Shown here: positions 2,633 through 64,000 of the stretch, in pieces
How positions within the stretch are numbered: the first letter of the stretch is position 1
Layout of the letters: each line of letters begins with the position of its first letter
Made by a program: the position numbers and the translations under genes
Assembly (NCBI GenBank): GCA_044892525.1
Contig: CM097888.1
Span: forward strand, 72,106,001 to 72,170,000
DNA length: 64,000 nucleotides
DNA from: Schmidtea polychroa
Taxonomy: Eukaryota
Direction of reading: 5' to 3'
The notes under the pieces: model-generated
Databases searched by the model: none
Seen by the model: the letters and a program-made list of their open reading frames with translations, nothing else
Told to the model about the DNA's origin: nothing

Positions 2633-10007
<7,375 letters not shown>

Positions 10008-20705: not shown

Positions 20706-22734
20706 TGGGATTTGCACTGGGTATCACAAAGGTTGTAATGTTTATATTAGAATAATAAATATTTATGTTAATTGATTTAGAGATATTTCCGCAATTAGGG
20801 GAAATCACTTGTGTGACTAGCAAAACTAATGTGTTTAAAGTGCAAGTCAGGAGTTTTAAAATTTAAAAAGGAGTTTTTGAAGTTATATTTGGATCCTTTA
20901 TAAAATCTTTAATTTGATATATTTGTTGGTGAAAATAAAATTTGAACAGAATGCATGAATCCAGATAACGATATTTGGTAAACGATTAGTTCATCGAAAA
21001 CAAATTAGTCGAATGATCAATTCACTGATGAACTTACCCGGGAATCATTGAAAATACTTTTCTGATTAGATCACTCCCTAATGTCAACGTTATATATCTA
21101 ATCTTTCTCATTTTACCAGTAACTATGACAACATCCTAGAGGTCGTTCTTTGAGCTTAAACTATCTGCATATTTCAAAGTTACAAGATAGACGAACAGCT
21201 TTAGCCAATCTTAGCATAGAAAACGAACATGCGAAGAAAACCTACGTTGATGAACTTGTTAACATTTGTGCAGTGAGAAAGCGTCGCAGAAAGAAATTCT
21301 GTACATATTGTAGAATGTATATTGTAGTTGATTTTTATTAAACAACCAAACTGGCTTAATTAAATGTTTAAAGAATAACAGCGCGTTTACCGGCAAATGA
21401 ATGTGGGGGCTCGAATATAAAGGTTATATGGGACCTGTGCTGAAAAATCTTTATAATTAGATTTCAAACATTCATATCTCAAATCTCAATCCCGAGATTT
21501 GGGATTGATGTCAATCTCGATATTTTGCGATTTTAATAGTCATTCTGCTCAGATTTTTATTTATAATGCTTGAATTAATATTTGCCGATGAAAGGTATAT
21601 TTATTTTTTATATCATTTATTTTGTTTGGTGTTTTTACTTTTGAAATATTTTGAATTGAATTATGAAAAAAACTCACCTTAATTATGAAAGGATCTTCAT
21701 GATAATTTTTATGTAAATCCAATAATGAACTTTAATCGAATTTTATTGTTTCTTTATCAATTTTATTATGATTATATTATGATTATTATTAATTATTATT
21801 TTATTTATTTCGTTAAAGCTTGTGGATACTCATTCTCAGTGCGGTGATTAATGAATGATCATATTCGATACTTGAACAGTAATCACTGAAAAACTCGAGC
21901 TTCCTCAGTAGTCTCTCTCACACGATCTGCAATCAGAAGCACGCACCCAAGTGATTTATGCGAAAGTCCAAAAGTAAGGCCAGTAATAAAATATCGTTAC
22001 ACTAATGTAACAAGACTAGACGTAGAAGTGCTCACTGTAAGTTATAAACAAATGCCTCTAGTTCGAATTTCTGCTGACAATCTCTGCGCCAGCTAACTTC
22101 TCTATTCCATGTTTGATTACCTCTGCCGAGCTACTGAACACTCCGTAATTTAATATTCAATATCGACCTAGATTTTGACCAAGATCACTGTTTTTTTTAC
22201 TTCTTCATATAAACAATGTCTCCCTACTGTATGTGGAAAAAATTGTATCATGGAAAACAAATTTTCTTTCCAACAATAAATTTTTACCAATTGCCGCAAT
22301 AAAGTGTAACTGTTTTCTGCTCATTTTCATCTGTTTCTCAAACGTAAGAGGACAATTAAAATAATTTCATTACAATAAATATGACTTAAAAAAACAATTT
22401 TCATTCACAGCGCATTTTAATTATTCGATTTTTATTATACCAAATTAAATTTATGCTTCATGTTTATGTCACGTGAATTCAAATTAAATTGGAAGTCAGA
22501 TTTTTCCAGAAATATTCATAGATTGCATAATTAATTTTTATTGATTAAAGTGTTTTCTCAAGTGTAAAAATCTATTAAACTTTANNNNNNNNNNNNNNNN
22601 NNNNNNNNNNNNNNNNNNNNNNNNNNNNNNNNNNNNNNNNNNNNNNNNNNNNNNNNNNNNNNNNNNNNNNNNNNNNNNNNNNNNNNNNNNNNNNNNNNNN
22701 NNNNNNNNNNNNNNNNNNNNNNNNNNNNNNATCT

Positions 22735-50433: not shown

Positions 50434-51378
50434 ATGCAAGGCTATACAAATCTCGCTAATATTGCTGTAATCAATCCACTCTCTACAATGGATACGACAA
50501 AGAATTCTCATCCTCTCTACAATGGTTATCCTAATCCGAAAAAAGCTCGCTTGATTCAACATGTCGTATTTTCTAAAACCGCAGCAGCGAACGGATCGGA
50601 ATTACCAGGAATTGATATCGATGCAAGCACTATCGGGTCAATGAATAATAATAATGTTCCAAACAAAATTCAATCGCATACACCATCAGAACACAATCCA
50701 TATTCTACACTGATGGCAAACAATGCAACAACCTGCTTCTATTCTCCGGGATTTTTGGAACCATATGTAATCAATACAGAAAATCTTACCCAATCAGCAG
50801 CCCAAACATTTGATTTAACAAGGATTCCTGTTTCGAATAAAACTTATTGCTCATTTCCCAATCCAAGTTCAGCGTTAAGCAGCATATTTCTAACTGGAGG
50901 TGGCATTGAATGGTCTGGTGCACCATTATCCACATCCAATCCATTTCAATGCATTTCAAGTTCCACAACAGACAACATGAAATCAAATAACATAAACTAT
51001 CAAAGTTCATATGGTGATTGTAATGATATCACCAATTCCCTACTAAATAACCTCAAATCAAGAGATGTATTTCAAGCCCAACAAGAATACAACAACCGAT
51101 ATTCCGATAATCCTCCATCATATTTGAAATATGATCAATCTCCAGTTGAATGGTATAAGTTGAAAGAAGAAACGTAGGCTTTTTGCGTTTTTATGGTTTA
51201 ATAGAAAATTTCAAATTTAAATTTTCTAGCCGACCAAATTGTTCTGTTCCAACAGCTCTCTCTTCGGATCAACTTAGCAATGGCTATGATTACAACTATC
51301 GAGAGATGAAAGAGAAAAGAAAATGTGATGTTTGTGGAGATGTTTCCGCTGGATTTCATTGTAGTGCATTCGTTTGTG
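50434..51378 (+). CDS. Nuclear hormone receptor, 5' part (long A/B region plus first half of the DBD), continuing into a gap
   Basis: 247-codon ORF, a phase-2 intron (donor 51153 or 51174, acceptor 51229), then CDVCGDVSAGFHCSAFVC followed by a codon starting with G. The C-x2-C-x13-C spacing is that of nuclear receptor zinc finger 1. Confidence 0.8.
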
Positions 51379-53521
51379 NNNNNNNNNNNNNNNNNNNNNN
51401 NNNNNNNNNNNNNNNNNNNNNNNNNNNNNNNNNNNNNNNNNNNNNNNNNNNNNNNNNNNNNNNNNNNNNNNNNNNNNNNNNNNNNNNNNNNNNNNNNNNN
51501 NNNNNNNNNNNNNNNNNNNNNNNNNNNNNNNNNNNNNNNNNNNNNNNNNNNNNNNNNNNNNNNNNNNNNNNNNNNNNNNNNNNNNNNNNNNNNNNNNNNN
51601 NNNNNNNNNNNNNNNNNNNNNNNNNNNNNNNNNNNNNNNNNNNNNNNNNGAAAATTATTTCATTTTATTAAATATATACGTTGCAAACGCTATCTTTAAA
51701 TTATTTAACTTCTCAACTTTTCAAGACAATTGTCGTTTTTTTAATTTTCCAAAATGATCATCATTTATTTTGAAATTTATATCACTCAAATATTTACCAA
51801 AATTAACGAAATAAAGACCGTTTAAAACTTATCAAAATGAAAATCAATAAAAATATAAACTTAATTTGAAAAACAATTAAAATAATGATAATTATCCAGA
51901 AAGTCACACATGTCAGCACTGGGGGAAAAAACTGAAAATGTTTCACGTTTTAATTTCTTTTCACCATATTGTCGTAAATTGATTTGTGAAGCTCTGCACT
52001 TTTGCTGCTTTAGTGCTGGTTTCTCAGACCGAAATGGCATTATTGATTGATTGAATTTTAGAAAGGAAATTAAAATAGAAAATATTTCAATCGAAATTAT
52101 TGTACATTTTCAATAAAAAGAATAAAATTATTATCGATAAGAAATGATTTCATTAATTTTACGGTTCTTTTTATTGGTGTTGTATTTTATAAATGATAAT
52201 TAAATTAATGTTTGGCAAATGTTTGGGTAATATATTTTAATTGAACATTCATCTTTTTGACTTTTAAAATTCTGTAATGAATTCTAAACCCCTGAAGCTT
52301 TGAAGGATCTTCCTTATATGTTTTAAAAGTTATTAATTTAAGTATGTCATTTATATGTATCACATCATAACATGAATATGGAAACCGAAGCTTTATTTGT
52401 GACACGATATGAAAAGACAAAACAAATTAGGTCTGACTCGAAAATTTAAGTAATCATGTAAACTGAAGTAATTTTTATGCGTGATTAATTCTGATCCATG
52501 CTGAGTTAGGATTACCGTTAAGCTAACTAGGCTGCCTATGACGCAAACCTCAAAGATGCTTATTTATAGACTGTCAACACTCGCGATTCAGGATAGAAAC
52601 GGGACTAAACGCGATTAAATCGAACTATTCGGTTAGATGTATTGTAATGTAATTTCAATGCAAAATCCAAAATAAGATGAGTCATCAATGGAAGTGGGAT
52701 GAAAAGGCTGGTATTCGAGAAAGAAGTTTAAAAAGGGGATATTATGTTGCTATTAGATAATAGAAATAAAATCGGAAAAAGAATAAAAGCATTATATTCA
52801 GTGAAATATGGTAAAAGAAGAATAATAAAAGTGTTTCTGGGAGTCAAGGAAGTAATATATCTTAAATGTATAGAATATTTCCATAGGGAATTGAAAGGAG
52901 AAAGGAAAACTTGATTGACTTATACAGGGAGAAAAATATGTTTGATAGGTAAATTCGGAATCATCGAAATTATAAAAATTAGATAATAAATGAAATTTCA
53001 ACTCGTTCATCCAAATTGGTCCGACACATAGCGATATCACACCAGGAAGAATTGCTAAAACGTTTTATTGATATACATTGCTGATGCGTATAATTGTATA
53101 ATATATGTTGATTATAATATAAAAAGGTTTTTAAAAAATATTCTCAAATATAAGTGACCGAATTTACATGAAATTCCATAAAAAATAAAACGGTAAAGGG
53201 ACTAACAATTGTTTCGATAGTTGTTATAACAAGAATTTTTGATCAATTGTAAGTTTTCCCAACATCATTACATCGTTATGGATATTTTCATTTCTCAATA
53301 CAAAATACTTATCATAAATTTTATTTTGCACTTGCACGTTAATGTAAGTTAACTAATTTAAGAGAAAAAGGAAAATATTTTCCTCAGAAATAGAAATTGT
53401 TACCATCATATACTCCTATAAACCACTCAGTTGAAAGATATTTGCAAACTTTCGAAAAGTGCATGAATTTAATAATCAATTAAATGGACTTATTATCACT
53501 TTTTAACATATAGTATATTAA

Positions 53522-54049: not shown

Positions 54050-54853
54050 AACGATATGTCAATTAATAAAATCGATCAATAATGCTGATACAACTTATAA
54101 ACTGGTTTGGCAGGGCTATCCAATTTTAATCATTTGTACAACCGATTTAGATAGGCATTTTCATTCGTTTGGCCTAGGCATATGTACCAATGAAAAAACT
54201 GCTGATTTTAATTTTATTGTTTCAAGTATCAATATTGGCTTGAAAAAAATAAATGCATCATTATTCAATCCTCGTGTATTGATTTCTGATGCCTCTAACG
54301 CTATACGTAAAGCTTATTCACAAGTTTTTGATAAAAATGAAATTGTGATGTGTTGGGCACATATGCGTAGAAATTGTATCAAAAAAATCGAGTCTTTAGT
54401 AGCTAAAGAAGATCAAAACGAATTAATTGAAGATGTAGATCAACTTCAATTGTCACAAAGCCAAGTCATTTTTGAAAAAGCAAGTTCTCTATTTTTTAAA
54501 AAATGGAGACAAAAAAAGCGACTGAGTTTTTAGACTATATGAATATGATGTGGCTTACGACACACAATACGTGGTATGAAGGATACATGCCCTTCAGGCC
54601 AAGTACTAACAATAATCTAGAGTCAAATAATCGAGTTCTTAAAGACGAAGAAACTATTAGAGAGCGCACGCCATTATCTAGATTTAGCAAACAAGCTTTA
54701 GATACTGTTAAAAAGTGGTCACTAGCATTCGATCAATTTACGAAGCGAGCTTTTACTGTCTGGCGCATTAATTTATCAAACGATAAAGCCAATTTGGCCG
54801 ACGGTCAGTGCAATTGTCCAGCATTTTTAAAAAAATTTATTTGCAAGCATGTT
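54050..54853 (+). pseudogene. MULE transposase fragment truncated inside its SWIM finger
   Basis: ADTTYKLVWQGYP, ISDAS, MCWAHMRR, PSTNNNLESNNRVLK, CNCPAFLKKFICKHV. One frameshift near 54520; similarity ends abruptly after CKHV at 54853. Confidence 0.85.
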
Positions 54854-55197
54854 AGTAGGTAGTTAGTGGCTTACGGCAGCAATAGGGGGGGGGGGGTAAA
54901 AAATGTTGCAAACTTTTGATTGCATAACTTTTTCCGTAGACATTTTTTGATTACATAATTGTTGCCGTAATGCCCAATGTTTTCTGGGATTTTAAATACA
55001 AATTTTTTTTTTTTTTTTTTTTCAATAAACAAGCCAAGGATAAATATTATTTGGGTGGGTCTCCTTGGTCCTGAGAATTTCAATAGAAAAAGGTAGTCTT
55101 CAATAAAAAAGCATGGATTTTTCACACTATAGTGAGGGGATCTTCTTGGTCATGAGAATTTCAATAGAAAAGGTGGTTTACATTAAAAAAACGCATA

Positions 55198-55830
55198 GTA
55201 AATTTTTAAAATAAAGCAAATTATGGGTCTAAAATTTAAAAATAAAGTAAATGATGGGTCTAAAAATTTAAGTAAATCAAGGTTCAGATTTATTTTTGAA
55301 ATAAAGTAAATTATGGTCTAAATAAGTAAATTATGGGCTAAGATTTTTCAATTAAAGTAAATAATGGTTCTAAAAAATTAAATTACAGTAAATTATGGTC
55401 CAAATTTTTAAATTAAAGTAAATTATGGTTCTTAAAAATTAAATTAAAGTAAATTATGGTCAAAATTTTTGAATTACAGTCCAAAAATTTAAATTAAAGT
55501 AAATTATGATCCAAATTTTTAAATTAAAGTAAATAATGGTTCTAAAAAATTAAATTAAAGTAAATAATGGTCCAAATATTTTAAATTACAGTAAATAATG
55601 GTTCTAAAAATTAAATTACAGTAAATAATGGTCAAAAATTTTAAAATTAAAGTAAATTATGGTTCTAAAAATTAAATTACAGTAAATAATGGTCAAAAAT
55701 TTTAAAATTAAAGTAAATTATGGTTCTAAAAATTAAATTAAAGTTAATTAAGGTCAAAAATTTTAAAATTAAAGTAATAATTTTTAAATAAGTAAATTAA
55801 AGTAATGTAATAAGTAAATTAAAGTAAGAT
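55198..55830. repeat. Subterminal minisatellite, about 30-bp monomer with a 61-bp higher-order unit
   Basis: About 20 units of AAATTA(A/C)AGTAAAT(A/T)ATGGT...; 55621-55681 is repeated at 55682-55742. Confidence 0.85.
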
Positions 55831-55854
55831 TTTTAAATTTATTAACAAAAATAG

Positions 55855-56013
55855 AAGGTGTTTGAGAATTGAAATTTTTTAATGGAAATTTTAATGAATT
55901 ATTTTTTAAGTAATTTTTAATAGAAATTTTTATGAATAATTTTCAATGGTAATTTTAAATGGAAATTTTAATAGAATAATTTTTAAGATAATTTTTAATG
56001 AAAATTTTTATGA

Positions 56014-56048
<35 letters not shown>

Positions 56049-56190
56049 TAATATTAATAATATATCAACCAAATACTATACAACACATAAAAAATTAACT
56101 AAACACATAAAAATAACTAGACACATAACAAAACATATAAACATTAACTAAACACATAAAAATGAACTAGACACATAACAAACATAAAAA
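55855..56190. repeat. Short degenerate tandem repeats between the satellite and the polB 3' end
   Basis: TTTTAATGGAAA-like 12-13-mers, an (AAT)n run, and ACACATAA..AACTA units. Confidence 0.7.
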
Positions 56191-56235
56191 TTTACCAAAT
56201 AACAAATGTAAAGATATAAAATTTATTTAATAAAA

Positions 56236-59200
56236 TTAGTCCTCATCGGACAAAATAACGTCATCGATATCGATGTCATCTTCTCCAAAATCTTCATTTA
56301 ATTCTTCCTCATCTTCTCCATCATTTTCTCCAACATTTTCTGAAACATTTTCTGCAACAATTTCTCCAACATTTTCTCCAATATTTAATTCACTTAATCT
56401 TACATGCCCATATGCAAGACTAGTATTTTTCCCCACCCAAACCCTTTTGTCATCTTTGTTAGTTAGTGCTATTTTTGTGTTTTTAATTGTAAAAATTTGA
56501 TGATTTTTGCTTGTTATTTTAGTCTGAGGAACCGAAAAAATCTGGTTAGTGTTATAACAATCCAGGTATGACTGATGTTTTATGTCACTACCTTTCAATG
56601 TTACACCTTTAGCCTTTTTTGTTTCCTCATCACTCAACAAGCTATAACATTTAGGTCTAAGAAAAACCCACTCCTTATATTTAAGACCTTTATTCTCGTC
56701 TTTGAACTTTCCAATGACTGAATCAAGGTTCTTACTATATAAGGAATGACAACTATTGTAATTGGAAGTATCCAATAAATTATCTCGAACCATTGCAGGT
56801 AAAAGAACCTCAAGTTTGCAGTTAATGACTTCGAGGAAAAAAGAATCTGTATCACCTGCAACGATATTAATTTTACAATTAAACTCATTGCGAATTGATT
56901 CCAGATCCTTATATTGCAATTCATACATTCTAAGTTTAGATAGATCAAGTACAGATTGACCAATGTAACTCGGTCTATCTAAACATATAGAATCTGAATT
57001 CAATAGTGCTGCAATTAAATTATCTGCTATTTTAATAGATTTTTTAAAAGTTGGTTTTGACGAATATTTAACTAATTTACCGGCAGTTGTACAAAGACGA
57101 AGATTCATTCTTCTCTTTAAATTTTCAACTGTTTTGCCGTATAAACTATTATTTAGCAATTTATAATAATTTTTATCTAAGCTATTTACGCTTTTTGATC
57201 TTAATTCAGTATTTGTATCTATATATTTTTTAAAAATTGGTGATTGCTTAAATCTTACACCCCTATTTACACGTGTTACTTTAACACCAAGTTCCAAATA
57301 TAATTTTAATAATCTCCAATGAATAACATAATTAGATTTTGGAAGATGAGTTAATAATAATTTTTCAACCTTAGACCCAGCAGGTTTCATTTTTTCAGCA
57401 GCTACAGGGAAATCATCCAACTTATCATGAAGCTCAGAAGGAATTACAAGATCAACTTCAAGTGTGTATCCATAAGACAAAGATTCAAGATTTAAATTCC
57501 TACATTCATCCATTATTTTATCAAATCCATCAAGAACCCAACAAAATTCGCCACAAGGTAATGATTGACTTAAAGCCCAGCCATAAAGATTATTAATATC
57601 TATATATAGTAACTCAGTGTTCTCGTCGGTTTTTACGTAATGCTTATTCACAAAAGTAAGACCGCCTCTTATTCCACCCTCATAAAAGCTAAACATTTCG
57701 TTTTCAGTTATGAGTTCAATTGGTTCATTTAAAGACATTAATGCAGAAGACCAAGACATGCCTGGAATTCCGAAATAATTCAATGGTTCCAATCTATTGT
57801 GAGCAATGGATTTCAACCGAAACTGATGAAAGAAATCAGCCAAAAGAAAACAATCAAGTTTTAGGTAGATCATCATATAATCTAATAAAGTTACGCAATT
57901 AGTTTCTACCCAAATCTCCTGAGCTTTTTCATACTCAAGCTCAGTGACACCCTCCCAGATTGGTGGTAATTCATAAGTAGTTTGGAGAATATCTAAAGAA
58001 GTGGCGAAATTATAAGGGAAGATTCCTTTTTCACTTACTATGGTGCCAGAAAAAGCAGAATTAGTAAAAGGCAAAGAATTCAAAGTTTTGACTGCTTTAG
58101 CCAAAGAATCATTGACAAATTGATACGAATCAATGAATCTTAGGCTAATTTTACCTAAATGAGCAATCAAAGATATAAATTTTTCCGTAGTTATTGGGAT
58201 GCACCCTAAATTCCAATTTTTAAATTTATTTAATCCATATTTAAGTATATGGTGCATATCGTATCCCTTCAAGTTGTGAAATACGATAGGCAAAATTTTA
58301 TTTATTTTTCTATTTACGTTACATGTGCTACAAGCTGCACCCAAGTATTTCCCCATAAAATGATCGTGATCTCTAACAGGATCCACGATAGATTTCAAAC
58401 AAAGATAACAAACCGTTGAATTAATGAATTGTTGTTGCTCAATTTTCGTTAATTTAATCATTGGTTTCCTACCCATTTTATAATAAAAAGGAAGAACCTT
58501 ATTTAATGCTATATCCTCTATAGCACTTAAAAAACTCTCGACGCAATCTAAACCTATGAACTGCTGATAAGATTTAGATCCGTCAAAGTTATTTACTAGT
58601 AAAAGACCAGCAGATATTGGCATGTGTCGCTGAAAATGATCATTATCAGAAGGTAAAATAGCCTCAAAATCGGCATAAACTACAAAAGGAGGAGTTACTG
58701 TTTTCGACCAGTCAGTAAACTGTAAGAATTTATTTTGAGGGAAAGTATAAAGAGTTGTTCCTAATTGATTACGTTTGCATAATATTTCATGTTTTTCTAG
58801 TGCGTTTCTATTATTAAACCCATTCAAACACCGATGGCACCATAATGAACGTATGCGTGTAGGACAAGTAGTGTTGATACCACAATTCAATAACCTATTT
58901 AAATTGCTTATAGCAACGTAATGGAAATTGTTCCCTTTATTTAATAATAGTAAATTAATTACAGTTCCATTTAAAACTTTGGAACGATGTATAATGTCTA
59001 AATGTGGGTGTTTTAAAACGTAATTATCTATTAATTGTTTGTTATTGTCATAAGAAAAAACGTTAATTATTAAACCAGGATTTTTGGCCTCGAATTTTCT
59101 AATATCTTTTAATTTCATGGGTAAGTCCAATGGATTATATATTAATTCAGATAAATTATAACTGGATGTCCTATTTCTAGCATAACTACTAACCTCATCA

Positions 59201-60577
59201 TATTTTAAAATAGCTAAAATGCTATATAAAAAACATGAATCATCGGTGTTTTTTATATTAATTAAACAATATTTATTTTTTAGATAAGTAGGTAGTTCAA
59301 TGAAACTCCTACCACTTAATCTACTTAGCCTACTTATCTTTGTTATGGTGAAGTGAATTTCTGTTATTTTTTTTATGATCCAGCTACTTCCTAACTCTGT
59401 GATATTACTTATTTTCTCGTTTAGTTCCCTAATGCCTTCGTCAAAAAATGATGCAGTTAAAGGCTTTGCATAATTTGAGATATTATTAACCTTTATTTCC
59501 CCGTCTTTTTCAAATTCGATTGTTATTCCGAATTGAATTTTGACGGAGACTAATTCGTTAATAATATCTCGTAATTTTTTTATTAGTTGTTCAGGAAATA
59601 TTATTTCTTTTATATTTAAGTCGCTTGTATTTAAGCTTAATATTTGATGGGTACCTCTTAGATCTTTTTGTATTATTGGAACATTTCCACCTATTTGTAT
59701 TATATTTAATCCATCCCAAGAGTCAAGGGAAATATTATCTAATCCGACCTGGGATTCAACAACCAATCCATCATGGGATTCGACAACCAATCCATCATTG
59801 GATTCCACAAAAGGCAATCCGACCTGGGATTCAAAAGAAGAAGTATCTAATTTAATTTTTTTATTTTTATTATTTTTTTCTATAGTTGAGGGTCTTTTAA
59901 AAACACTATCTTTTTTAAAATTAAACCTATCTAAATGATTTTTATGTTTATTATAAAAAACGCTATATGTTACGGGGTCACTAGTCTTACATACGGGACA
60001 TATAAAATAAGTTTTATTATAATATTTTTTTGTGTAATAATTCTCCATTATAGAATGGCAATTATTATCATGTTCTTTCGATGAACAATAATTTGGGTAA
60101 AGTATACCTATAAAATAAAAATTTAATAAAAAAAATATAATTTAAATGAAATATTTTAGTAAATGTTTACGCAAAAATTTGCAAATTATTATTATTTTAC
60201 AAATTTTATTTACTAAAAAATAAAAATTTACTAAATTAAAAATATTAACATTTACTTAAATAAAAAATTATATTAAATTTCCTTTAAATTATAAAAAGTA
60301 ATCAATACTTACATTGTAAATTTTCATTTCGATTTATTGACACATTGACATAATTTTTTTCTTTATTCGTATTACCTAAATTATTAATTAATTAAATCAA
60401 TAAATTAAAAATTATGTTTACTTTTTCTTTTCAAATTTCCTTTAATCTTAGATTTTAAATTGTCTTCATTAATATTATCTAAATTAATTAATAAATTAAT
60501 TAATAAATAAATTAAAATTTACCAAATTTCTGAATTTTTTCTCGGACATTCATAACGTTTTCTATTAAAGAATTCAT
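56236..60577 (-). CDS. polB: Protein-primed family B DNA polymerase, left-arm copy, spliced, about 1348 aa
   Basis: Exons 60577-60523, 60478-60422, 60375-60313 and 60107-56236 join in frame, adding 78 aa to the 1270-aa ORF. Exo I YADFE, Exo II HNLKGYD, Exo III YLKLD, motif A DINNLYG, motif B KLLNNSLYGK, motif C AGDTDS, plus KCY and KAKGV. EndoVII insert at 58318-58410. No stops or frameshifts. Confidence 0.95.
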
Positions 60578-60616
60578 TTTTAAAGGTTAACTATTTGTTA
60601 AATGTGACTAATGATT

Positions 60617-60720
60617 GATTATTGTTTATAGATTATTATTGTTTATAGATTATTATTGTTTATAGATTATTATTGTTTATAGATTATTATTATTGTTCAT
60701 AGGAACAAATTCTAACCAAT
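60617..60720 (-). promoter_or_regulatory. Putative polB promoter, left arm
   Basis: CCAAT element at 60716-60720 and four 17-bp repeats each containing TATAAA, 40-140 bp upstream of the ATG at 60577. Confidence 0.55.
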
Positions 60721-61205
60721 CAAAATCAAGGAAGGGTAGGAAAAAATTAATTTATTTTAAAACACATTTTGACGCTAAAGTTGACTTATTTAACATTTTC
60801 ATAATAATTTAATAAAAATAATGTGATGAACCCACAAAGTAATATCATTTTTCATCAAATTGCAAAACAGTAATAACGTTTTCATAAAATTGTAACAAAG
60901 TAATAACATATTTCAGATAAATTTTCAACAGTTGTAAAATATTTAAGCAAATTGTAACAAGATTAGAAAATATTACAACAAAGTAGTAACATATTTCAGA
61001 AAATTTCAACAAAGTTGTAAAATATTTATCAAATTGTAACTAAAATAATAAAAATATTGCAACAAAGTAATAAAATAATAATGGTAATTAAGACAAATCA
61101 ATACATTATTTCGAAGATGGACAACAAATTAAAAAGAATATTGTAACTAAAATAATAAAAATATTGCAACAAAGTAATAAAATAATACAACATTTTAAAC
61201 TCTAG

Positions 61206-61770
61206 ATCAATCCATTTTATAGAAAATTAAATTTTATCTATATAATATATGAATAAATATCCAAGGAAATTACGTTAACGTATAATAAATACAAATTTAT
61301 CGTAAAAACATGTGTGTATTACACACAAAACAAGATACATAATTTCTAATCAATCCATTTTATAGAAAATTAAATTTTATCTATATATTATATGAATAAA
61401 ATCCTAAGAAAATTACGTTAACTGTATAATAAATACAAATTTATCGTAAAAACATGTGTGTATTACACACAAAACAAGATACATAATTTCTAATCAATCC
61501 ATTTTATAGAAAATTAAATTTTATCTATATATTATATGAATAAAATCCTAAGAAAATTACGTTAACTGTATGAAAAATACAAATTTATCATAAAAACATG
61601 TGTGTATTACACACAACATACGAGACATAATTTTTAATCAAGCTATTTTATAGAAAATTAAATTTTATCTATATAATATATGAATAAAAATCCAAGAAAA
61701 TTACGTTAACCGCGCGAAAAACTACAAATTTATTGTAAAAACATGTGTGCATTACACACAAAGCATCAAA
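61206..61770. repeat. Four ~144-bp tandem repeats with internal palindromes, left arm
   Basis: Unit starts at 61206, 61349, 61493 and 61637. Each holds TGTGTGTA-T-TACACACA (one substitution in unit 4) and TACGTTAAC(GTA). Confidence 0.9.
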
Positions 61771-61899
61771 CTGAAATTGTAATTGCGCCATGTTGTAGAG
61801 AATTAAATTCTGCCTATACATTGTTACACTTAAATCTCGATCAGACATGTGAAAAGAGACATAAAAGAGAAAGAACAGTAGAGTAGTATGATTGGGGCC

Positions 61900-61979
61900 A
61901 TCCAGACCAGGTCACCGCCAGGCCACATATACCCTCTCCCCCCCCCCCCCCCCTGTGTGTAAAATAATGAGGCCAAGCG
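61900..61979. other. 80-bp asymmetric GC-rich spacer at the palindrome axis
   Basis: Non-palindromic, with a C16 run at 61938-61953 and several GGCC motifs. Flanked by ...AGTAGAGTAGTATGATTGGGGCC and GGCCCCAATCATACTACTCTACT.... Confidence 0.9.
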
Positions 61980-62108
61980 GGCCCCAATCATACTACTCTA
62001 CTGTTCTTTCTCTTTTATGTCTCTTTTCACAGGTCTGATCGAAATTTAAGTGTAACAATGTATAGGCAGAATTTAATTCTCTACAACACGGCGCAATTAC
62101 AATTTCAG

Positions 62109-62673
62109 TTTGGTGCTTTGTGTGTAATGCACACATGTTTTTACAATAAATTTGTATTTTTTCGCGCGCTTAACGTTATTTTCTTGGATTTTTATTCATT
62201 TAATATATAGATAAAATTTAATTTTCTATAAAATAGCTTGATTAAAAATTATGTCTCGTATGTTGTGTGTAATACACACATGTTTTTACGATAAATTTGT
62301 ATTTTTCATACAGTTAACGTAATTTTCTTAGGATTTTATTCATATGATATATAGATAAAATTTAATTTTCTATAAAATGGATTGATTAGAAATTATGTCT
62401 CGTATGTTGTGTGTAATACACACATGTTTTTACGATAAATTTGTATTTATTATACAGTTAACGTAATTTTCTTAGGATTTTATTCATATAATATATAGAT
62501 AAAATTTAATTTTCTATAAAATGGATTGATTAGAAATTATGTATCTTGTTTTGTGTGTAATACACACATGTTTTTACGATAAATTTGTATTTATTATACG
62601 TTAACGTAATTTCCTTGGATATTTATTCATATATTATATAGATAAAATTTAATTTTCTATAAAATGGATTGAT
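62109..62673. repeat. Four ~144-bp tandem repeats, right-arm mirror
   Basis: Reverse complement of 61206-61770 with about 12 substitutions. Confidence 0.9.
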
Positions 62674-63158
62674 CTAGAGTTTAAAATGTTGTATTATTTT
62701 ATTACTTTGTTGCAATATTTTTATTATTTTAGTTACAATATTCTTTTTAATTTGTTGTCCATCTTCGAAATAATGTATTGATTTGTCTTAATTACCATTA
62801 TTATTTTATTACTTTGTTGCAATATTTTTATTATTTTAGTTACAATTTGATAAATATTTTACAACTTTGTTGAAATTTTCTGAAATATGTTACTACTTTG
62901 TTGTAATATTTTCTAATCTTGTTACAATTTGCTTAAATATTTTACAACTGTTGAAAATTTATCTGAAATATGTTATTACTTTGTTACAATTTTATGAAAA
63001 CGTTATTACTGTTTTGCAATTTGATGAAAAATGATATTACTTTGTGGGTTCATCACATTATTTTTATTAAATTATTATGAAAATGTTAAATAAGTCAACT
63101 TTAGCGTCAAAATGTGTTTTAAAATAAATTAATTTTTTCCTACCCTTCCTTGATTTTG

Positions 63159-63262
63159 ATTGGTTAGAATTTGTTCCTATGAACAATAATAATAATCTAT
63201 AAACAATAATAATCTATAAACAATAATAATCTATAAACAATAATAATCTATAAACAATAATC
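63159..63262 (+). promoter_or_regulatory. Putative polB promoter, right arm
   Basis: ATTGG at 63159-63163, CTATAAACAATAATAAT units starting at 63197, 63214, 63231 and 63248, Inr-like TCATTAGTC, ATG at 63302. Confidence 0.55.
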
Positions 63263-63301
63263 AATCATTAGTCACATTTAACAAATAGTTAACCTTTAAA
63301 A

Positions 63302-64000
63302 ATGAATTCTTTAATAGAAAACGTTATGAATGTCCGAGAAAAAATTCAGAAATTTGGTAAATTTTAATTTATTTATTAATTAATTTATTAATTAATTTAG
63401 ATAATATTAATGAAGACAATTTAAAATCTAAGATTAAAGGAAATTTGAAAAGAAAAAGTAAACATAATTTTTAATTTATTGATTTAATTAATTAATAATT
63501 TAGGTAATACGAATAAAGAAAAAAATTATGTCAATCTGTCAATAAATCGAAATGAAAATTTACAATGTAAGTATTGATTACTTTTTATAATTTAAAGGAA
63601 ATTTAATATAATTTTTTATTTAAGTAAATGTTAATATTTTTAATTTAGTAAATTTTTATTTTTTAGTAAATAAAATTTTTAAAATAATAATAATTTGCAA
63701 ATTTTTGCGTAAACATTTACTAAAATATTTCATTTAAATTATATTTTTTTTATTAAATTTTTATTTTATAGGTATACTTTACCCAAATTATTGTTCATCG
63801 AAAGAACATGATAATAATTGCCATTCTATAATGGAGAATTATTACACAAAAAAATATTATAATAAAACTTATTTTATATGTCCCGTATGTAAGACTAGTG
63901 ACCCCGTAACATATAGCGTTTTTTATAATAAACATAAAAATCATTTAGATAGGTTTAATTTTAAAAAAGATAGTGTTTTTAAAAGACCCTCAACTATAGA
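63302..64000 (+). CDS. polB: Protein-primed DNA polymerase B, right-arm copy (5' part; runs off the window)
   Basis: Exons 63302-63356, 63401-63457, 63504-63566 and 63772 onward give MNSLIENVMNVREK...LQCILYPNYCSSKEHDNNCHSIMENYYTKK...FKRPSTI. Identical to the left copy except one V/L change in exon 3. Confidence 0.92.

Follow-up and report, generated by a model that had tools for sequence, protein, structure and literature searches.

A 64-kb stretch of DNA from Schmidtea polychroa, hereafter the window, ends on its right-hand side in a large palindrome whose arms carry the gene of a putative protein-primed DNA polymerase, and the locus raises the question of how a unit with this single gene came to be joined head to head with its own mirror image. 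The parts of the answer differ in strength. The best-supported of them is that the axis of symmetry, here called the hinge, carries a hairpin module of the kind that belongs to a terminus, which we regard as probable. The locus as a whole is a palindromic, polymerase-only derivative of Maverick type with what looks like its own hairpin-capable end as the axis, represented by a single and partly visible copy.

Organization of the locus

The window has a GC content of about 27%, and the features of the locus are collected in Table 1. The insertion target is the remnant of a MULE/SWIM-type transposase gene that consists of two reading frames separated by one frame change, and the element interrupts it directly after the SWIM zinc finger. 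The host bases directly to the left of position 54854, CATGTT, are the expected target duplication, if one exists; in Maverick/Polinton elements such a duplication measures 5-8 bp. The unit that begins at this position (25.9% GC overall) had been described in a sequence-only reading as a segment of 7,149 bp with a G12 run at its outer end and, at its other end, 23-nt arms 80 nt apart that enclose a C16 run (G16 on the minus strand); all of these coordinates and letters proved correct.

The polymerase gene is the only gene of the unit. According to the ORF list and the repeat map, no integrase, capsid, packaging ATPase or protease gene is present in 54854-62002, and no ORF of the unit encodes a nicking endonuclease-helicase of the Rep/NS1 type. 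On the far side of the hinge a second polymerase gene begins, whose 56 visible codons (63831-63998, plus strand) are identical to the corresponding ones of the first copy. The whole dimer is predicted to span 14,172 bp, from 54854 to about 69025, of which 9,147 bp lie within the window. No segment of the unit was found again elsewhere in the window by blastn, no second polymerase locus besides the palindrome copies was found there by tblastn, and neither the hinge 23-mer nor the outer 31-mer has a further copy in the 64 kb when up to three mismatches are allowed.

Elsewhere the window encodes a hAT transposase and fragments of a kinesin motor and of an RVT_1 reverse transcriptase, which by themselves mark the host as a eukaryote and probably an animal; searches for Rfam families and tRNAs found none in it. 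An inverted repeat pair at 3733-3928 and 22387-22584, about 18.5 kb apart and with an N run adjoining each copy, encloses kinesin exons and a reverse-transcriptase fragment; the pair looks like two copies of a short repeat and not like one large element. To the eye, the last part of the ORF at 51183-51377 (plus strand) resembles the first zinc-finger knuckle of a nuclear-receptor DNA-binding domain, which if real would point to an animal host; the ORF is interrupted by an N run (51379-51649), and its visible part has no Pfam match.

Table 1. Coordinates of the features of the palindromic locus in the window.
Feature	Position	Strand	Remarks
MULE/SWIM-type transposase gene remnant (insertion target)	54240..54853	+	Pfam SWIM E 9.4e-06, MULE match weak; ORF list
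Putative unit (monomer), 7,149 bp	54854..62002		Polymerase gene between two tracts of tandem repeats; outer end on the left, hinge end on the right
Outer terminus module	54854..54896	+	AGTAGGTAGT tip, GC-rich stretch (60% GC), G12 run
Subterminal hairpin of the outer end	54868..54974		Imperfect 16-19-bp stem and 74-nt loop
AT-rich tandem repeats	55199..56194		31/61-nt, 39-nt and 49-nt units; between outer end and 3' end of the polymerase gene
Polymerase gene	56236..60048	-	1,270 aa, uninterrupted; sole sizeable ORF of the unit
Endonuclease VII / HNH-like insert	58315..58422	-	Residues 543-578, between Exo I and Exo II
N-terminal ~430 residues of the polymerase	58759..60048	-	Candidate terminal-protein domain
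Tandem repeats	60214..61856		17-, 31- and 83-nt units; 144-nt array at 61201-61762; from polymerase start to hinge
Left arm of the 23-bp inverted repeat	61877..61899	+	Opens with the reiterated AGTAG tip motif
Non-palindromic 80-nt spacer	61900..61979		61% GC; C16 at 61938-61953 (minus-strand G16)
Right arm of the 23-bp inverted repeat	61980..62002	-	Putative 3' terminus of the unit (...CTACT at 62002)
Mirrored second copy, visible part	62003..64000		Mirror of 59879-61876; leaves the window

Structure of the palindrome

The two 23-nt arms at the centre of the palindrome are fully complementary and, together with the 80 nt between them, constitute a hinge of 126 bp; AGTAGAGTAGT begins at 61877 on the plus strand, and its reverse complement finishes at 62002. 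The central order is arm, a 23-mer that opens with AGTAG, a single 80-nt spacer, a 23-mer that closes with CTACT, and mirrored arm. The spacer is 20% self-complementary and folds on its own no better than shuffled sequences; the 126 nt of the hinge, folded as single-stranded DNA, reach about -30 kcal/mol with z scores of -7.4 and -6.6. Outward of the hinge stem the symmetry continues up to the end of the window, giving arms of 2,021 nt (59879-61899 and 61980-64000) that are 99% complementary and distinguished by 17 substitutions and 0 indels. That the mirrored arm reaches as far as the counterpart of position 54854 is an extrapolation from the 2 kb seen. In every scenario, the 126-bp module of 23-mer, spacer and inverted 23-mer had to predate the doubling; the DNA that lay to the right of the module before the doubling is not readable from the finished palindrome.

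The differences between the arms are unevenly spread, with 15 of the 17 no more than 430 nt away from the stem, inside or next to the 144-nt array, and two in the remaining ~1,590 nt. Unique sequence contains two of the differences, and the neighbouring repeat units do not explain four or five of those close to the hinge. The packing near the hinge involves 61473-61847 and its counterpart 62032-62406, where two 144-nt units of the left arm are identical and the mirror units differ. In their letters, some of the differences look like exchanges between adjacent repeat units. The crowding beside the hinge suggests either such exchange between units after the doubling or polishing noise, for which the position within the repeat array leaves room. 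The restriction of the differences to substitutions favours two real, separately evolving arms of recent origin.

Comparison of the two ends

The proposal that the unit has AGTAG...CTACT ends of similar design stands as far as the tip, the GC island and the G run are concerned, but it does not extend to an alignment, none having been obtained between the two ends beyond about 11 nt and the G run with blastn (word size 7) or MAFFT. The hinge module is indeed built like the outer end, with a reiterated AGTAG-type tip, a GC island, a G run and a hairpin whose loop measures 74-80 nt. GTAG occurs twice at the outer tip and AGTAG twice at the hinge tip; in protein-primed replication, reiterated tips serve sliding-back or jumping-back initiation. 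The minus-strand G16 is situated 50-65 nt from the tip at 62002, and the G12 (54885-54896) 32-43 nt from the tip at 54854. Runs of at least ten G or C occur three times in the 64 kb, two of them at the ends described here, and just two GC-rich islands (56-61% GC) are present within 54854-64000, at 54851-54910 and 61876-61990.

When one optional inserted base is allowed, the tip motif has four matches in the window against 0.05 expected: the outer end, both hinge arms and one site within the polymerase gene. The combination of the tip motif, 10-40 nt and at least ten G is found in the window solely at 54854 (plus strand) and 62002 (minus strand) and in 0 of 100 shuffles, a pattern that was defined after the data were seen and is an indication, not a test. 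By these sequence features, the ends have a design in common and not a conventional terminal inverted repeat. Inside the polymerase gene, positions 59287-59297 (plus strand) hold an exact copy of the outer-tip 11-mer, which lies over conserved-motif codons with an invariant proline and is probably the result of chance plus coding constraint.

In the hairpin of the outer end, the core (54871-54883 and 54958-54970) has 12 of 13 positions paired, and the loop opens with the G12 run; its DNA fold has z scores of -2.8 and -3.6, with one of 200 shuffles equally good. The reach of the stem distinguishes the two ends, the outer one leaving its last 14 nt unpaired and the hinge stem including the final base, so that the hinge alone could self-prime. 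The dimer is joined exactly at the sole end that offers a paired 3' terminus. In a relative, the contig end on the polymerase-upstream side (L003:1-80) is GC-rich in places and includes nine or more consecutive C, a hint that other members of the family may likewise have a homopolymer run close to the polymerase-proximal end.

The polymerase

The polymerase has relatives of 50-57% identity, among them metagenomic proteins of 1,242-1,267 aa (57% identity and 96% coverage for the one of 1,242 aa), and the best named polymerase relative comes from Hydra; an exact look-up in a collection of 15 billion proteins found no identical polymerase. The window protein has no Pfam match below 0.01, and sequence searches of Pfam and the PDB with the protein and with its family profile returned nothing significant. 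Five of 25 relatives match DNA_pol_B_2 (PF03175), the best with an E value of 2.7e-32. Across the family, the acidic residues of Exo I-III, Pol A and Pol C do not vary, nor do the Lys and Gly of Pol B, and the window protein retains all of them. The identity of the enzyme was named by fold comparison and not by a sequence search of the window protein. The AlphaFold (AF2) model of residues 430-1240 has a pLDDT of 90.6; its top match among solved structures is phi29 DNA polymerase (E 1e-20), followed by family B enzymes near 1e-10, and its best matches among viral models are PolBs labelled densovirus, adintovirus, MELD virus and bidensovirus (E 5e-58 to 1e-44). On the strength of this model, the gene product is predicted to be an intact, phi29-like, protein-primed family B polymerase with strand-displacing activity.

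The insert between Exo I and Exo II matches the Endonuclease VII family of Pfam (PF02945) with an E value of 0.013 here and of 0.001 or lower in 20 of the 25 relatives, and two His residues are invariant. Endonuclease VII-type enzymes cleave branched and cruciform DNA, and it may be speculated that an insert of this type is apt for an element that forms palindromic junctions. An HNH insert is already known from the pPolB2 class of Polinton polymerases (PMC10748475). The N-terminal region of about 430 residues features Asp269, Cys272 and His376 and a Cys404-Cys407-His420-Cys424 cluster, invariant across the 25 relatives, and at the level of sequence these residues look like a thiol-enzyme triad plus a zinc knuckle. 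The region has no Pfam, PDB-sequence or fold match, and its model is mediocre (pLDDT 66.6). By analogy with the ~400-aa N-terminal domain of polintoviral PolBs, which has been proposed as the terminal protein (PMC4061559), it may be a terminal-protein domain and is treated here as a candidate. At the other end of the protein, the acidic C-terminal tail is encoded by a 12-nt-periodic repeat (56310-56386, minus-strand coding) and is disordered in the AlphaFold model. The polymerase of one relative (52% identity) lies on a 15-kb contig together with an rve integrase and other virus-like genes; faint matches to a packaging ATPase and to adenovirus pX occur on the same contig.

Relationship to Maverick/Polinton and bidnavirus-type elements

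With the polymerase as the only gene and tandem repeats as the remainder, the unit is classified as a polymerase-only, non-autonomous derivative of Maverick/Polinton type. It resembles Maverick/Polinton elements and adintoviruses in its predicted protein-primed PolB with a long N-terminal extension, its AG...CT tips, its insertion into host DNA and the presence of an rve integrase and virus-like genes beside the polymerases of relatives; adintovirus PolBs are among the best fold matches, and an HNH-type insert is found in pPolB2 as well (PMC10748475). It differs from Maverick/Polinton elements in the size of the unit (7.1 kb against their 13-25 kb, with 14,172 bp predicted for the dimer), in the missing integrase, capsid, ATPase and protease genes and in its ends, which share about 11 nt and a G run, whereas Polintons possess inverted repeats of 100-1,500 bp (PMC10748475). 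In the dimer, each arm is the inverted repeat of the other over at least 2,021 nt. A further difference from Maverick/Polinton elements is that the entire copy here is palindromic, and no report of a palindromic Polinton dimer was found in a literature search.

Bidnavirus-type replicons are comparable in being linear and about 6-7 kb long and in encoding a Polinton-derived PolB with a candidate terminal-protein domain at the N-terminus (PMC4061559), and the best fold matches of the window polymerase include PolBs with the labels densovirus, bidensovirus or parvo-like. Unlike them, the unit carries no capsid, helicase or other genes, and the copy is integrated. The terminal repeats of bidnaviruses are reported not to form hairpins of the parvovirus type (PMC4061559).

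Proposed origin by fold-back of a free copy

We tentatively propose, giving the idea somewhat less than an even chance, that a polymerase-only Maverick/Polinton derivative underwent fold-back at its polymerase-proximal end while it was being replicated and that the product entered the genome as an inverted dimer. As part of the same tentative reading, the locus would be an inverted, polymerase-head to polymerase-head dimer of an adintovirus-like unit inside a MULE-type remnant. A free linear unit would be replicated by strand displacement, and a displaced or newly made strand ending in ...CTACT-3' would snap back and pair its last 23 nt with their inverted copy, located 80 nt upstream. Extension along its own strand to the outer end, by the strand-displacing polymerase of the element or by a host enzyme, would generate a hairpin molecule, which after another round would become a duplex palindrome of the predicted 14,172 bp with two identical outer ends, a single hinge module common to both halves and the polymerase gene in duplicate. 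The palindrome would then be inserted via its two outer AG ends into the MULE remnant by an integrase provided in trans, and the few differences between the arms, mostly in the 144-nt array, would arise after integration. The free molecule, the responsible enzyme and integration as a unit are the steps that we infer; the design of the ends, the paired 3' end and the geometry are read from the DNA itself, and the type of the polymerase from its fold.

Several observations count for the fold-back reading. The hinge has a terminus-like design, and a paired 3' end is present at the hinge only; the polymerase is intact and of the protein-primed type, and that of a relative lies beside an rve gene. 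The arrangement AGTAG...spacer...CTACT with one copy of the spacer is predicted by fold-back and not by end-to-end ligation, and differences that are substitutions only (17 in 2,021 nt) fit two physically separate arms. Polymerases of the phi29 type produce mostly inverted junctions, which arise from displaced 3' ends primed on 2-21 nt of complementarity (PMC1855051). The sequence-only reading had held that folding of the 3' end at 62002 onto 61877-61899, followed by extension, yields exactly the palindrome observed; this gives the visible structure exactly, but the agreement covers the visible 2 kb only. Switching of the polymerase to its own product at the hinge hairpin would give the same structure.

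Other points count against the fold-back reading. The locus is a single instance, with the outer end of the right arm beyond the window, and the two ends share about 11 nt and a G run, so that the monomer is at most a putative working unit. A pre-existing internal inverted copy of the terminal 23 nt is needed, for which the model does not account. A protein-primed replicon has no need of hairpin priming, the integrase is missing from the unit, and amplification or assembly artefacts can yield an identical geometry.

Alternative explanations

An artefact of this kind is unlikely, though far from negligible. The real locus would then comprise one unit at most, and the assembler would have accepted a mirror arm derived from chimeric long reads or from fold-back chimeras made in vitro by whole-genome amplification with a phi29-type enzyme. 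Of the chimeras that amplification produces, more than 85% are inverted, with priming on short stretches of complementarity (PMC1855051); the palindrome is located at the edge of the window, and 15 of the 17 differences are in or adjoin the tandem array, where polishing is unreliable. An artefact is harder to reconcile with 0 indels over 2,021 nt despite many homopolymer runs, with two substitutions in unique sequence, with the failure of neighbouring repeat units to account for four or five near the hinge, and with a spacer that carries the element's own end design and not a foreign adapter-like sequence; even if the arm were an artefact, the 126-bp hairpin module would have to be in the genome. 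We consider it rather improbable that the hinge is not an end but a hairpin inside a longer, complete parent, at which replication from the outer end turned back to leave a defective palindromic genome. Defective palindromic genomes do occur in other protein-primed replicons, the boundary of the stem is invisible in a finished palindrome, the two presumed ends do not align past about 11 nt, and tip-like strings can be internal, as is the outer-tip 11-mer at 59287 in the polymerase gene. For a hairpin of internal origin, however, the joint presence of a tip motif, a GC island, a G run and a similarly sized loop would be a chance coincidence (0 of 100 shuffles; two GC islands only), and the gene would read towards the parental outer end with just 1.4 kb of repeats between them, so that a second large deletion would be needed.

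The palindrome may also have been made on the chromosome, a distinctly improbable course of events in which the monomer 54854-62002 integrated normally and a double-strand break or fork template switch then took place at its right border. A resected 3' strand would have folded on the 23-bp repeat and copied leftwards, as in Tetrahymena rDNA, Leishmania amplicon or ODIRA events; the hinge would still be the end of the element, and host machinery would have made the palindrome. The geometry is that of palindromes formed at short inverted repeats, where 42-bp repeats with a 28-bp spacer convert 11 kb into 21 kb (PMC5182062; see also PMC4256157 and PMC10766183), and the DNA fold shows the hairpin module to be real and strong. 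Yet such an event would extend the mirror image into the host flank and usually leave a gross rearrangement behind, and a reference genome is less likely to contain this than a bounded insertion; nothing within the window indicates a break at 62002. Two independent insertions, or end-to-end ligation of two monomers, are favoured by nothing except the presence of two copies, and their likelihood is close to nil. Ligation, which would set ...CTACT against AGTAG... with two oppositely oriented spacers, is ruled out by the one spacer observed; independent insertions are ruled out as well, since they would not agree base for base over 126 bp and their centre would contain target duplications.

Parallels in other fold-back and palindrome systems

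A giant palindrome with a short perfect inverted repeat and a non-palindromic spacer at its centre is also known from Tetrahymena rDNA, in which a unit of about 7-11 kb is doubled (PMC5182062). The parallel with this system that had been drawn from the letters of the locus fits well in its geometry, that is, a short inverted repeat by a DNA end and a non-palindromic centre (PMC5182062), and the repeats of 23 bp, the spacer of 80 nt and the arms of at least 2,021 nt correspond to a short-inverted-repeat palindrome. In Tetrahymena, by contrast, programmed chromosome breakage creates the end and a free chromosome results, whereas here the end would be the terminus of a mobile element and the product is integrated. 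The dimer junction of parvoviral rolling-hairpin replication contains one duplex copy of the ~120-nt terminal hairpin between mirror-image genome copies. A single hairpin copy between mirror-image copies is likewise found at the hinge, and the parvoviral parallel is sound with respect to this geometry; it breaks down in that no Rep/NS1-type nickase is encoded, that one end alone is hairpin-capable in the sense of self-priming, that the stem is a simple one of 23 bp with a large open loop, and that the polymerase is of the protein-primed type.

Defective adenovirus genomes and the hairpin derivatives of yeast linear plasmids are snap-back products of protein-primed replicons. The inverted chimeras made by phi29 polymerase in vitro are similar in that strand displacement, with a displaced 3' end on nearby complementarity, leads to an inverted duplication of one end (PMC1855051). 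All of these are free molecules or test-tube products, unlike the integrated copy described here. To our knowledge, there is no example of an integrated, germline snap-back derivative of a protein-primed replicon. The telomeres of Streptomyces (PMC4513846) provide a further likeness, being the ends of terminal-protein-capped linear replicons and full of palindromes that fold back; they differ in being bacterial, in belonging to replicons with internally initiated replication and end patching, and in their unrelated proteins.

Implications for Maverick/Polinton replication

Replication of Maverick/Polinton elements as free, linear, protein-primed molecules is assumed, and in animals the assumption rests almost wholly on gene content. 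A far-reaching and very unlikely possibility is that the hinge is a normal replication intermediate of a lineage that protein-primes one end and self-primes the other by a hairpin, in which the endonuclease VII/HNH-like insert resolves palindromic dimers and of which the copy here is an unresolved dimer. If true, this would be a living link between protein-primed replication of the Polinton type and hairpin-primed replication of the parvovirus type, the two parents proposed for bidnaviruses. On the more modest proposal of a single fold-back event, the locus may preserve a trace of the way in which such elements replicate. If that proposal is true, the palindrome would supply sequence-level evidence of a free linear copy with a 3' end, of its copying by strand displacement and of its subsequent integration, and it would show how a polymerase-only remnant with poorly matched ends can obtain perfect inverted repeats, each about 7 kb long, in a single step. 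Terminal hairpins whose loop contains a G run are a feature worth seeking in the polymerase lineage that is closest by fold to the adintovirus- and bidnavirus-type enzymes.
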